The notes under the pieces are model-generated. The model worked only from the letters and a program-made list of their open reading frames with translations. It was not told the DNA's origin and made no database searches. A DNA stretch of 63,751 nucleotides, counting the filler, from Olpidium bornovanus S191 (lineage: Eukaryota > Fungi > Olpidiomycota), in the NCBI GenBank assembly GCA_017911155.1. It is 30 parts of 30 records of this genome, joined end to end, with 100 filler letters (N's around TTAATTAATTAA, not from the genome) between each part and the next. Parts side by side here need not be neighbours in the genome. Positions count along the whole stretch, not along the records: positions 28,629 to 31,305 come from JAEFCI010006302.1; 29 more parts are not named here. The stretch is one strand, 5' to 3'. Shown here in pieces: positions 28,629 through 32,993 of the stretch. The first letter of the stretch is position 1. Every line of letters starts with the position of its first letter. The position numbers and the translations under genes are program-made.

Positions 28629-29150
28629 CATGACACTGTTGTGCCAAGACATTGTGCTTTGTCTGTGCACGTGGCTTGTCGATGTCTCGATTCGACTCGC
28701 TGTTCGTTGACTAGCAGTGTAGTCCCAATTTATTGCTTTCTAGCGCTCTCGTTCAGGTGGAGTGGCGCAATTCATTGTCCACGTACCTTGCTCTGTTCTG
28801 CCCTGCTCTGGTTCACCGACGTGAGAGCTTGACTCTTGTCTGCTTCAATGTCAGCTCAGCGATGACGCCACTTGCCCTAGGTGCGGTCTCAGCTACAAGG
28901 GACGGTACGTGCACAGGAGACTTGGTGCAGATGAGCCTGCCAAGTTCCTCAAGTGCAGATGCTCCGAGCTGGATGACACGCATGACGTCGTTGTGGAGGC
29001 ATGCATTGCAGTTGGTTCCTCTCTGCTCAGTGTGCCACCGCTCTCTCGAGATCAGCGCTTCCTCTCGTCTAGTGCTCTGCTCTGTCGTGACAGGTGTTTC
29101 GTGGCTGACGGGTTTTCCATCTCTGTTGAATACGAGATTCGTCTGAACCC
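28629..29150 (-). pseudogene. Possible decayed LTR-retroelement gag
   Basis: A stop-riddled frame (ERWHTEQRGTNCNACLHNDVMRVIQLGASALEELGRL) loosely resembles copia gag; no primer site or LTR found. Confidence 0.25.
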
Positions 29151-29359
29151 GCACTTGTCACGCCTAGTTTACGAGTTGGTCGGCCCTGCTGGTCAGTGTC
29201 ACTGGACCGAGTCAGGCTTCCCGTGTTCGCTTGTCGTGTTTTCCTCAGGTCGGGAAGACTCAGATCCAGAGGAGCGTCGGATATGACTGTCAAAGTTAGT
29301 GACGTTGCTATTGATCCGGCCCCTGGCATGATCTATGCGACGTCACTCGAGGCAAGTGT

Positions 29360-31283
29360 TCAGTATGGCGAGAGCTCAGACCTGTCTCTTGCTTCCCCGG
29401 AGACATCGCCCCCGTGCCCGAGGAGGAGCGTACGCCGCCCGCCCACCGGCAACAGCTCTACGACGCGCGGAACGTCGCCCCCGCCCTCGGGCCGTTGCAG
29501 CTCGCGCCGCACTTCTGCCTTCGTCGCCCGCCGGCGCCCCAAGAGGAAACCGCGCCCCAAGAGGAAACCGCGGCGCGGCCTTCCAAACGGCGCAGTCGCA
29601 CGAGCACAGAACTCCTCCTGGCGGGAGCCGTCGGCCACGAGTCCGACGCGCCCAGGAGGCCCGCCCCGTCCGACAATAGATAGTAGCTCAAACAAAAGAA
29701 GAATAAGAAGACGTACTGCGCGCAGTACGTCTTCTGGCGTCATCAGGGGTCACGTGACACCCCCGTGCAGAACGTCTCGGGAGGAGAACCGGCTTTCGGC
29801 GGTGTACTGCCTTAACACCTCGTTTCTTCCCACTTGAGTTTTCTCGCGTCGAAATGGCCTTTCCGTTGAGAACAAAGGTGATATTCCGCTTGTTTTCGAC
29901 CTCACGCTGGCGACTAGCTGGACACTGGCGGGATCTCTGATTTTCTCCCAAACGAGATAATGACCAGTTTTGTACGTCTAAAGGTCTCGATCACGGCGGG
30001 CCCCCCCTAGCGACCTTGAACTGCTAGGTGGAGTTGGCGAGCTCGTGCTGCTAAAAGTCCGGAAGCAGCACCTCCCCCAGTGCTTCGGCCACAATTGCCG
30101 CTGCACCGGCAAACTGGTTCTCGTCGTCCGGTTCTACCTCGTTGTTGGGATCTTCTTCCGTTTGTGGCGGCACCCTGGCGTCAAGGCGGCCGATCCAAAT
30201 TAATCAACCTGAAGAAGCGGGGGCGGGAGACGTCCTGGCGAAATCAAAGAAAATCGAATTTTCCTTACCGCGTGATATATCTGTCTAGCGTGTTTTGGCC
30301 TTGGCGAAGACCGTTGATGTCCTGCCACGACGGCAGATACGGCCGGAGCCAGGGAAACCGGCAGACCTCGTCCACGAAAGCCTGGTGTGCTTGTGCGTTG
30401 GGGCACAACAGTGCCACCGCTAAAGCGATTTTACGGCAAACGCCAGGGACGGTCGCCGCAAAGACTTCGTCGGCGTCGACGGAGGGTTCGGTTGAAGCGG
30501 GGCGTTTCCATTTCTTTCCGGAGCGGATGGCTTCCGCAGACCCATGTACGCGCATGCCTGCTGGTGGGAAGTATCAACCTCGGGGGTCTGTGTTTCGGAT
30601 GACATGCGGGGAACACACTTTTGGATGAACCGCAAACGCGCGTCAACCGGTTGGACGTGTAAATGGCGAGGTCGATTTCGGTGTAGAAATGTGCACCGGC
30701 GCCGCTTTCCAATTCACGGGCCATGGCGTTCTGAAGGGCGACGAGCGGGTCCGGGTCTGCAGTCGCGACGTTGTCAACATTCCCAGAACAGACGGAACGG
30801 GAGGCGTACTGCGCGCAGTACGCCTCCCGTTGCACAGAAAACAACAAACCCTGCGGCTGCGCGTACCGTTATCGCCGACCACGCGCCTCAAGGACGAACG
30901 GTTAAAAAAAACTCGGCCGGAAGATGATATTTGTCGCGATGGGCAAGAAAGTAGCCGACGAAAACCAATGCGAATGAATAGTGGTGGAGACAGAGGGTGC
31001 GAAACGCTATATTGAACCCTACTGAACGGTGTCAGCCCCTAGCCACAGACGTACTGCGCGCAGTACAAGTCTTACACGTCTTACCTTTAAAGTAAACCGA
31101 CGCCTTTAGTCCATCACCCGGGAGGCTCTCCTCGACGCAAACGGCATCAGCTTCCAGGGGTCCTCCGGGGTACAATGCCCAATCCATGGTCGCGGCCGTA
31201 AAATCAACAAAGGCGCGCACGAGTTCTGCCGCGGCCCGCCGGGACCTCGCGTTGCGCTCCTCCCCTGTCGCCGGGGAACGCAC
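29360..31283 (-). CDS. Unidentified multi-exon gene hosting the palindromes
   Basis: The exon ending at 31085 (ELVRAFVDFTAATMDWALYPGG...SVYFK) splices in frame through a GTAAGA...CAG intron 31084-30757 to DPDPLVALQNAMARELESGAGAHFYTEIDLAIY. Further exons are uncertain. Confidence 0.45.
29706..29735. repeat. Perfect 30-bp palindrome, copy 1
   Basis: AGAAGACGTACTGCG|CGCAGTACGTCTTCT. Confidence 0.97.
30796..30831. repeat. Perfect 36-bp palindrome, copy 2
   Basis: AACGGGAGGCGTACTGCG|CGCAGTACGCCTCCCGTT. Confidence 0.97.
31047..31072. repeat. Palindrome copy 3 (16-bp perfect core, bulged extension)
   Basis: AGAC-GTACTGCGCGCAGTAC-AA-GTCT. Confidence 0.9.
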
Positions 31284-32993
31284 GTAATACCACTCGATAT
31301 CGAAANNNNNNNNNNNNNNNNNNNNNNNNNNNNNNNNNNNNNNNNNNNNTTAATTAATTAANNNNNNNNNNNNNNNNNNNNNNNNNNNNNNNNNNNNNNN
31401 NNNNNCATGCGGGTACTGATTGCCAAGAGGTCTGATAAAGAGTCAGAGTAGTTGGTCAACTTCACAAAAGGATGAAAGAAATAGGGTAAAAGGGAAGAAG
31501 GAAGAATAGAGAAATCTCGTTGGTCCTGTTTGCTCAAGCTCCTTGACCGTTGACCGGGCATCTTGATGAATTCTGTATTGACAAAAGGGAAAACGTGTAT
31601 GAACCAGGACAAAGGCACACACGCCAAGCAAATCACGAAATTTGACAAAGTCGGGACCACGGAGACCTTTGTGAGGCCGTCTGCAAAGTTGCGAGGACGG
31701 CGCAACTTTGCCGCCTGAAGTGCAACCGCGATTTTCTTCTCCTGCGGTGGATTCCAGGCCTCTTGCACAACATCGAGGTATGCGGGGCGCGTTGCCGAAC
31801 CTATCGCCTTCCTGACACTTCTGTGTTCCGCTCGGGTTGGCTGTGAGCGCTGGCTTTGGCATTGTACAGCATTGTAAAAATCTTCCATTCGTCAGGCCCG
31901 ATTAGCGCAACTTTGCAACCAAGCTTACCCAGCCACAATCACTCGTCAGATGTACAGGTTTAAGTCCTTGGTGCGACCAGGCCGGTTGACGCACGGTCTC
32001 TGCGGCACAGGTGCCTGCAACCAGGTGGCAGTGCCTGTCGACTTTTGGGCGTTTGAGTGGCCAGCATTGCCAACAGCGCTGTGCTGCCGCTCGCGCTGTT
32101 GGCGGTGCTGCTGCTGCTGCTGCTGGGACCGCCGCCTGCACTAAGCCCGCTGCGCAACGCGGCGTCAAAGCAAGCGCCTGCGGCTGGGCAGCCACGGCGA
32201 CGGACCTGGGCACGGACTCGTTTCAAACTGCTCGTGGAATGTTCAGACCTTGGACACGTTGCTGGCGCTGCGTGAGCCCCGGATCAACCAGGATCGGTCC
32301 ATGCGCGCGCGGGTGCAGGCGCGACCGGCACAGGCGTAATCGGCACAGGGCCAGGGGGTTTTCCCAAGGCGCAGCCAATGGCATAGGCAGGTTGGCCCTT
32401 GGTTCCAGGGGGACCGTGTCGCGTGCGCGCGCTTGGCGCGGGGCGGGGCGGGGAGGGGGGGTGTGGGGCGGGGAGGGGGGGCGGGGGGGGGGGGGGGGGG
32501 GGGTGGGGGGAGGGGGCCAAAGGGAAGGAGGGGGGGGGGAACCCGTATTGAATAGGACCGAAAGAGAATCCGAGAGCCGACTTGGGGCGGAGACGCGGTG
32601 AGCTTGAGAGAAGGGAGGGGAGGAGAGAAACTGCATTCGCGGCGTTGCTTCTCCAACGCCGGAGGCGCCTATTTTTTTTTTTTTGGCGGGGATCTAAGAA
32701 TTCTCTTCAAAGAGAGGTGGCACCAGAAGTGCGTCCTCCGCTCAGCCTCCCTCTTTGTTCTTGCCCCGTTATTCGTTATTCGACCCCTTTAACAGTCCAG
32801 GGGGGGGTGGGGGGAAGGGGGTGCCGGGTAAAGGGGGTTGGGGGGAAGGGGGTGCCGTGTAAAGGGGGGTGGGGGGAAGGGGGTGCCGCGTAAGGGGGGG
32901 GGGGATAACGCGGTCCCGCATGTGGCGCGCACGTTTGCGGCACCGCCCCTAATCCCCCCCGCCATCAACGCCCCTTTCCGAACGCCGTATGCA

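Follow-up and report, generated by a model that had tools for sequence, protein, structure and literature searches.

The closest described analogues of the sequences analysed here are the repetitive extragenic palindromic (REP) elements of bacteria and the palindromic mini-repeats of organelle genomes. REP/BIME sequences, which are mobilised by RAYT, an HUH-type Y1 transposase, are palindromes of 20-40 bp that lie outside genes, have a sequence conserved across the family, often occur in local clusters and in pairs bracketing other DNA, lack target-site duplications and can act as stem-loops in RNA. The organellar palindromes, i.e., those of Volvox mitochondria and plastids, LIMP and HyLIMP of Lobosphaera, the GC clusters of yeast mitochondria, the PstI palindromes of Neurospora and the double-hairpin elements of Allomyces, combine a conserved centre with variable stems and are confined to intergenic and intronic DNA. 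In HyLIMP, complementary mutations restore pairing (PMC4524435), and the spread of organellar palindromes is presumed to be selfish (PMC2670323). Here we analyse three palindromes with the common core GTACTGCGCGCAGTAC, designated c1, c2 and c3, in a window of 63,751 nucleotides from the fungus Olpidium bornovanus S191 (assembly GCA_017911155.1), the window being the whole stretch of DNA, in which 30 parts of 30 records are joined by filler. All three lie in one piece of it, positions 28629-31305 (JAEFCI010006302.1; 2677 bases), where c3 and c2 bracket a non-coding block.

The listed properties of REP elements recur at this locus. However, a REP element is an imperfect palindrome whose GTAG head is conserved, and hundreds of copies occur in prokaryotic genomes, whereas the palindromes here are perfect and have GTAC; the 16-nt core is single-copy in each of the 120 prokaryotic loci listed, no transposase-like open reading frame (ORF) was found in the piece, and the context looks eukaryotic or virus-like. 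The likeness to organellar palindromes lies in the placement outside coding DNA, in the 24-bp unit and in three mirrored transitions between c1 and c2, which are described below. In contrast, those palindromes belong to organelle genomes, are mostly A+T-rich and have loops of 3-7 nt, whereas the piece has 58% G+C, the palindromes have no spacer, and no tRNA, rRNA, organelle RNA family or organelle gene was found in the piece. In Volvox, the copies found in the nucleus are degenerate and were transferred from organelles (PMC2670323); the copies here are perfect. The locus thus fails the comparison with its closest analogues on compartment, on palindrome imperfection and on copy number.

Results

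Three palindromes share a 24-bp unit

Exact matches to GTACTGCGCGCAGTAC were found at three places in the piece, 29713-29728, 30806-30821 and 31051-31066, where none is expected by chance. A search allowing up to two mismatches added no further match in the piece, dinucleotide-preserving shuffles yield none, and half-site searches of the piece for degenerate extra copies gave nothing beyond chance. These counts bear out an earlier, sequence-only reading of the window, which had reported three copies of the 16-mer in 1.37 kb; the maximal-palindrome measurement likewise agrees with the arms it described, 30 bp and 36 bp perfect in two copies and 16 bp plus a bulged 4 bp in the third (Table 1). 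The self-complementarity is far above chance, as compared with 500 dinucleotide shuffles of the piece: three palindromes of at least 14 bp were observed versus a mean of 0.18 per shuffle, and the longest perfect palindrome in the shuffles had a mean of 11.4 bp and a maximum of 22. The three palindromes are real and non-random, and all of them lie outside the segments with coding periodicity.

It should be noted that the common unit is 24 bp, AGRC-GTACTGCGCGCAGTAC-GYCT, rather than 16 bp. The AGRC motif stands 5' of the core in c1, c2 and c3, and GYCT directly 3' of it in c1 and c2. The ends of the unit vary as AGAC or AGGC on one side and GTCT or GCCT on the other, the A-to-G change in c2 being mirrored by T-to-C in the opposite arm. 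Beyond the 24 bp, the pairing that is specific to a copy adds 3 bp to each arm of c1 and 6 bp to each arm of c2. The sequence-only reading had proposed a fixed 16-bp core whose flanks were converted to inverted repeats specific to each copy. The fixed core stands, whereas conversion is not required to explain most of the arms, which belong to the common unit or differ between c1 and c2 by mirrored transitions, and would concern only the outermost 3 and 6 bp.

We then compared the seven paired arm positions adjoining the core in c1 and c2, and counted four identities, three transitions and no transversions; all three transitions are compensated on the opposite arm. We estimate the probability of four identities, three transitions and no transversions in unrelated sequences at about 0.01, and this mirrored pattern suggests that the arms of c1 and c2 are homologous and evolve in concert. 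The pairing stops sharply, at 15 positions in c1 and at 18 positions in c2, which fits a templated process better than the slow decay of an old palindrome.

Outside the palindromes, no similarity between the flanks of the copies was detected in any orientation, either by Smith-Waterman alignment against shuffles (p>0.2 for all 12 flank pairs) or by self-BLAST. Because the flanks are unrelated, segmental or tandem duplication is excluded, and the earlier statement that the copies are not simple duplications holds. A longer asymmetric unit, seen by eye in the right flanks (GTCT..GG..TGACA..CAG), was rejected on the same results, since none of the 12 flank pairs was significant and self-BLAST returned only the palindromes. 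Another perfect palindrome, the 10-bp GTCACGTGAC with a CACGTG core, is located at 29749-29758, 14 nt downstream of c1, and is nested in the longer quasi-palindrome GGGGTCACGTGACACCCC.

Table 1. Features of the analysed piece, in positions of the window
Feature	Positions	Strand	Description
c1	29706-29735	none	30-bp perfect palindrome, AGAAGAC-GTACTGCGCGCAGTAC-GTCTTCT
c2	30796-30831	none	36-bp perfect palindrome, AACGGGAGGC-GTACTGCGCGCAGTAC-GCCTCCCGTT
c3	31047-31072	none	16-bp perfect core (31051-31066) and 4-bp arm extension with a 2-nt bulge, AGAC-core-AA-GTCT
U-rich tail	29696-29705	minus	TATTCTTCTT, directly 3' of c1 on this strand; from the scan for terminator-like sites
c3-c2 block	30796-31072	minus	277 nt, bounded by c3 and c2
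Candidate GT..AG intron of the sequence-only reading	30757-31084	minus	328 nt, AAAG/GTAAGA ... TTGAC ... CTGCAG/
9-nt tandem duplication	31064-31084	minus	GTAAGACGT / GTAAGACTT, period 9, 2.3 copies, abuts c3
Capping-enzyme-like fragment	28855-29384	plus	About the first 170 of 730 residues; start-less, frameshifted, truncated

Occurrence of the core in other collections

We searched for the 16-mer in IMG/VR (a collection of viral contigs) and in metagenome and prokaryote genome collections, and found it in 10 IMG/VR contigs and in at least 120 contigs each of the metagenome and prokaryote genome collections. Among the 250 matches listed, which come from unrelated taxa, the 16-mer is single-copy at every locus, and no multi-copy GTACTGCGCGCAGTAC family was found among these viral, metagenome and prokaryote matches; its frequency in prokaryotes (at least 120 loci) is about that expected by chance. 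The arms extend beyond the 16-mer by 0, 1, 2, 4, 9 and 11 bp in 193, 46, 7, 2, 1 and 1 of the listed loci, respectively, i.e., by 0-2 bp in 246 of 250, and the extensions in c1 and c2 are therefore unusual.

Two of the loci contain long perfect palindromes around the 16-mer, 34 bp in a Nocardia sp. contig (L147, 2433-2466) and 38 bp in another prokaryotic locus (L211, 129-166), with unrelated arms. Both are probably terminator-like hairpins, and they show that a palindromic 16-mer can on occasion form the middle of a longer hairpin unaided.

The c3-c2 block and the candidate intron

At the ends of the c3-c2 block, the palindromes form terminal repeats of 20-24 bp that are direct as well as inverted; the inverted arms, at 30806-30825 and 31047-31066, span 20 nt with 95% complementarity. 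The interior comprises 215 nt, and codon periodicity is absent at 30849-31028. No direct repeats were seen by eye at the boundaries of the 24-bp unit or of the full palindromes, and the 9-nt tandem repeat next to c3 is one-sided; this repeat duplicates the candidate 5' splice site, so that two in-frame candidate sites lie 9 nt apart. Eight consecutive A (T8 on the minus strand) are located mid-block at 30902-30909, and A-box-like and B-box-like motifs were noticed near them, by eye only and without a tRNA or Rfam match.

On the minus strand, codon-position G+C supports coding in frame 1 (31304-31085), frame 2 (30756-30640), frame 0 (30560-30269) and again frame 1 (30174-30051). The sequence-only reading had placed c2 and c3 inside a GT-AG intron (Table 1). 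Its removal indeed joins two frames, ...SVYFK being connected in frame to DPDPLVAL...; however, deletion of the 277-nt block does so equally, leaving an open frame (...VYFKGKTCTVCSGNVDNVATADPDPL...) that passes from frame 1 to frame 2 via a bridge of 17 codons. The candidate intron is 3-6 times as long as any other candidate intron of the piece. Three plus-strand GT..AG introns with pyrimidine-rich tracts, called by the same criteria, were rejected because protein homologues are collinear straight through them. Since these plus-strand calls turned out to be coding, intron calls from sequence alone are unreliable in this piece. The frame changes on the minus strand may be equally explained by decay, as in the plus-strand gene fragment described below. 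The minus-strand ORFs have no Pfam match and no homologue, and they did not match the profiles built for the capping-like gene's four neighbours in related elements. Thus, the intronic position of c2 and c3 is not secure and is treated here as a candidate.

No supported intron contains c1, which had been proposed to lie just before the pyrimidine tract of a probable second intron. The palindrome starts 20 nt past a double stop codon, TAG TAG (29681-29686), in plus frame 2, which shows the best codon-position pattern upstream of c1 (G+C in position 3 > position 1 > position 2), and coding periodicity is lost downstream of c1. Within the same upstream region, 29534-29572 on the plus strand contains 2.2 copies of an 18-bp unit, GCGCCCCAAGAGGAAACC, as a perfect tandem repeat, which frame 2 reads as APQEET twice.

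Folding of the palindromes

As RNA, c1 is predicted to form a 13-bp stem closed by a loop of 4 nt (-20.5 kcal/mol, z -4.6) and c2 a still stronger hairpin (-31.4 kcal/mol, z -5.7), whereas the local hairpin of c3 is weak (-11.8 kcal/mol, z 0). The minimum-energy fold of the 328-nt RNA has a c3:c2 stem of about 22 bp, with about 220 nt looped out between the two strands, and this pairing accounts for about 87% of the ensemble. If both local hairpins are imposed instead, the fold is only about 1 kcal/mol less stable than the minimum, and the predicted stability of the entire stretch does not exceed that of its shuffles (z -0.93). A scan for terminator-like sites picked up c1 with its U-rich tail on the minus strand, but such sites are not enriched in the piece, with 2 found versus 3.3 expected from shuffles. 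The tail of c1 is 316 nt from the nearest minus-strand stop codon; the stop codon 20 nt before c1 is on the plus strand. Neither of the other two copies is placed after a stop, c3 being upstream of the nearest minus-strand stop and c2 200 nt from it. Apart from a chance-level 19-nt match, no tRNA, Rfam family, organelle RNA family or intronic small nucleolar RNA was found in the piece.

A decayed fragment of a capping-enzyme-like gene

The six-frame ORFs of the piece gave no Pfam match and no homologue in an indexed search, and no phage similarity of the piece was found. A HMMER search with the plus-strand ORF at 28825-29283 returned ten relatives (E 3e-9 to 8e-4). For seven of the ten (30-38% identity), homology spans most of the ORF; in six of these seven, it is the protein's own N-terminus that aligns. 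Among the six, one is a protein of 154 aa on a 1.1-kb contig, and the other five have 562-756 aa or are cut by a contig end. By eye, KxDG and GxGxG motifs are present in some of the full-length relatives; mRNA_cap_C matches one relative weakly. Annotated related proteins are CCA27725.1 of Albugo laibachii and KAF8516072.1 of Gautieria morchelliformis, the latter on a 269-kb contig.

The contigs of the relatives (L251-L254 and L258-L261; 14-24 kb) come from soil metagenomes and from Logan assemblies of public sequencing runs. They also encode a DNA_pol_B protein, an RNA_pol_Rpb2_6 protein and several ORFs without a Pfam match, and the capping-like gene starts 200-400 nt from a contig end on contigs of about 14-18 kb; no conserved terminal sequence was found upstream of this gene. 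These contigs look like linear virus-like elements, and their gene set resembles that of cytoplasmic linear virus-like elements (PMC6211774, PMC13348850). Their G+C content, 44-57%, is far from that of the A+T-rich yeast virus-like elements.

Of the approximately 730 profile positions, the piece retains positions 3-122 in frame 1 (about 28867-29238) and 125-169 in frame 0 (29247-29381); the homology thus moves from frame 1 to frame 0, which indicates a frameshift near 29230. Upstream of 28909, frame 1 lacks a start codon, the ATG at 28863 being one base out of frame, and the homology is no longer recognisable past about 29384. The partial homology, the frameshift and the absence of a start codon show that the plus-strand gene is a truncated, decayed fragment. 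Therefore, the nuclear context that had been assumed for the locus is unproven: the only identifiable gene is a decayed fragment derived from linear virus-like elements. The region that directly follows (about 29330-29730) has 65-73% G+C and no homologue, with three plus frames open throughout and three minus frames open over most of its length. CpG is not depleted in the piece (observed/expected 1.15).

In the related contigs, no inverted repeat with arms of at least 8 bp and a loop of up to 6 nt was found in L251, L252 and L254, and no stem of at least 8 bp with a loop of up to 4 nt in L258; an integrated copy (L257) contains only one unrelated 16-bp AT-rich palindrome, and the core GTACTGCGCGCAGTAC is absent from L257 and L258. 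We therefore rejected the possibility that such palindromes are a feature of related virus-like elements. Because the relatives of the gene lie on intact elements without them, the palindromes are additions specific to this genome.

Two 1.1-kb metagenome contigs (L255 and L256) carry a stand-alone N-terminal domain of the capping-like protein, 154-162 aa; just downstream of the domain, in another frame, a sequence resembles by eye a retroelement RNase H motif (IPGHKGIPGNKEADKLA). These two contigs suggest that fragments of the capping-like gene are scattered in eukaryotic genomes.

Discussion

We tentatively favour, as a possible explanation, a lineage-specific family of hairpin-forming palindromic micro-repeats of 24-36 bp that inserted in non-coding or decaying DNA and is kept symmetric by hairpin-templated repair. 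In function, its members would be comparable to REP elements and to the mini-repeats of organelles. New sites would be reached either through a transposition-like insertion of the unit or through its capture when a break is repaired. During replication or repair, any copy would be able to extrude as a hairpin, and one arm would be re-synthesised or corrected on the other as template (intrastrand template switching). In this way, a substitution in one arm would be passed to the other, and the palindrome would stay perfect or gain a few flank bases. Perfect symmetry, mirrored substitutions and sharp ends are the product expected of intrastrand repair or template switching, and families with a core, a variable stem and compensatory changes are represented by HyLIMP (PMC4524435) and the Volvox repeats (PMC2670323). 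The decaying surroundings, i.e., the start-less, frameshifted and truncated plus-strand gene, would be a permissive site for insertions. Here, c3 and c2 would bracket a 277-nt insertion interrupting a minus-strand reading frame, and c1 would be a solo unit, as expected after recombination between two bracketing copies; in Hypoxylon, deletion between two copies of an intronic palindrome leaves one copy (PMC8469720). If transcribed, the copies could form hairpins of 13-16 bp, or a c3:c2 duplex of about 22 bp looping out the insert; in our view, these RNA structures are consequences of the element and not its purpose. Mobility, the copying mechanism and the host compartment are what we infer in this explanation.

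Several results weigh against a dispersed, hairpin-repaired family. So far it consists of three copies, all on one 2.7-kb contig, and three copies within 1.4 kb could have arisen from a local process rather than belonging to a genome-wide family. None of the 250 matches listed in the viral, metagenome and prokaryote collections resembles this locus, and the 261 fetched loci contain neither a sequence similar to the 277-nt block nor a second copy of its interior. No target-site duplication was seen by eye around the single copies or around the block. In addition, the 5' arms are purine-rich and the arm of c1 continues a purine-rich flank, i.e., the arms may be copies of the flanks.

Two eukaryotic systems offer partial parallels for the c3-c2 block. 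The internally symmetrical sister stwintrons and the cropped introns of Hypoxylon, which are introner-like, also have two copies of a short palindrome in one intervening sequence, within terminal inverted repeats. Derivatives with a single palindrome arise there after deletion, and target-site duplications are lacking (PMC8469720). However, the Hypoxylon palindrome is 10 nt long (WTTCTAGAAA) and lies in imperfect terminal inverted repeats of 45-55 nt that reach the splice sites, and near-identical introns number in the dozens, whereas here the symmetry ends with the 24-36-bp palindromes, the block is not known to have a sister copy and the intron is only a candidate. Miniature inverted-repeat transposable elements (MITEs) are similar in that the block is non-coding, of typical MITE size and has terminal inverted repeats of 20-24 bp, and dissimilar in that the block has no target-site duplication and each terminus is itself a perfect palindrome; moreover, a solo 30-bp unit would be smaller than any MITE known to us. 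An excision footprint of a hAT/P/Tc1-type transposon was rejected, since the geometry is reversed, with an invariant centre and a variable outside, and flanking direct repeats are lacking.

The palindromes could instead be selected cis-acting RNA structures, either terminators or 3'-end signals for the RNA polymerase of a virus-like element or an intron zipper, in which the c3:c2 stem would bring the 5' splice site near the branch point of an unusually long intron. The only identifiable gene derives from elements related to yeast virus-like elements, which terminate transcription at stem-loops a median of 26 nt past the stop codon; in pGKL1/2, a stem-loop about 20-26 nt past the stop codon is followed by a U-rich tract (PMC6211774). 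The neighbouring gene fragment comes from elements with a similar gene set, and c1 combines a distance of 20 nt past TAG TAG with a U-rich tail, although here the tail is on the minus strand, whereas c3 and c2 have the unsuitable positions relative to minus-strand stops noted above. The terminators of virus-like elements are, however, weak (median -7.5 kcal/mol), unrelated in sequence and often located inside neighbouring ORFs, in contrast to the strong hairpins with a common core found here, and five related element contigs have no comparable stem, of 8 bp or more, in 12-15 kb each. For the zipper, the prevalence of c3:c2 pairing in the ensemble is favourable, as is the length of about 18 + 39 nt left outside the stem, compared to 54-94 nt in the other candidate introns; against it, the duplex is similar in energy to the local hairpins, the whole intron is no more stable than its shuffles, and the intron itself is a candidate. 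Neither an identical 24-bp core nor zero-spacer perfection is needed for terminators or zipper stems, and we consider selected RNA structures unlikely. The mechanism of the sequence-only reading, in which a mobile core of 16-24 bp converts its flanks to inverted repeats by hairpin-intermediate transposition or by snap-back synthesis at a break, regards the arms as copies of local flank, outside the element. It gains from the sharply ending extra pairing in c1 and c2, from the AAG-rich flank that the left arm of c1 continues, and from the short extensions, mostly 0-2 bp, beside the same 16-mer in the prokaryote and metagenome matches listed. Nevertheless, 4 bp per side, most of the arms, are common to all copies, the exclusively mirrored transitions between c1 and c2 point to homology, and only the outer 3 and 6 bp per arm could be derived from the flanks; we also know of no transposase that makes inverted target duplications. 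This mechanism is accordingly rated as quite improbable.

Zero-spacer two-fold symmetry and an invariant centre of 16-18 bp are typical of the binding sites of dimeric proteins, and the clustering of three sites within 1.4 kb would suit an operator with two half-sites CGTACTGCG, recognised by, for example, a recombinase, a repressor or a factor that binds origins or termini. Such an operator is nonetheless very unlikely: it leaves unexplained the perfect complementarity of the variable outer arms to 15-18 bp, the piece encodes no candidate protein, and the sites lie outside recognisable promoter positions. A sequencing or assembly artefact, i.e., adapter or linker remnants or fold-back chimeras, could be suspected because the contig has no close relative in any collection searched and because the frameshifts in the recognisable gene could reflect indel-prone reads. 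However, fold-back chimeras have long arms and no constant core, whereas arms of 4-10 bp surround an identical core in three different flanks here; the reading frames run on at both sides of the c3-c2 block, and, unlike a common adapter, the 16-mer shows no enrichment in other contigs of the three collections. We know of no identical sequencing adapter. An artefact is the least credible of the explanations considered.

Returning to the hairpin-repaired micro-repeats, a more specific version, to which we give only a slim chance, is a counterpart of REP elements that is eukaryotic or carried by a virus-like element. Such a unit of about 30 bp would move in the form of a DNA hairpin and leave no target-site duplication, and DNA enclosed by two units, as in the c3-c2 block, would be mobilised by them. 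Both strands of the unit contain GTACG(T/C) and GCAG, and the unit could therefore seed or enlarge spliceosomal introns in either orientation. If this were true, it would be the smallest eukaryotic mobile element known and a new route of intron gain.

Whatever the origin of the palindromes, the locus is a caution on intron calls from sequence alone, which are demonstrably wrong on one strand here. If the palindromes occur only at this locus, they are no more than a local oddity within the decaying remnant of a virus-like element. If they are dispersed in the source genome, hairpin mini-repeats of the REP or organelle type would propagate outside bacteria and organelles, templated repair would be able to maintain perfect symmetry at the scale of 15-18 bp, and such units could enclose other DNA and perhaps carry it into genes or introns.

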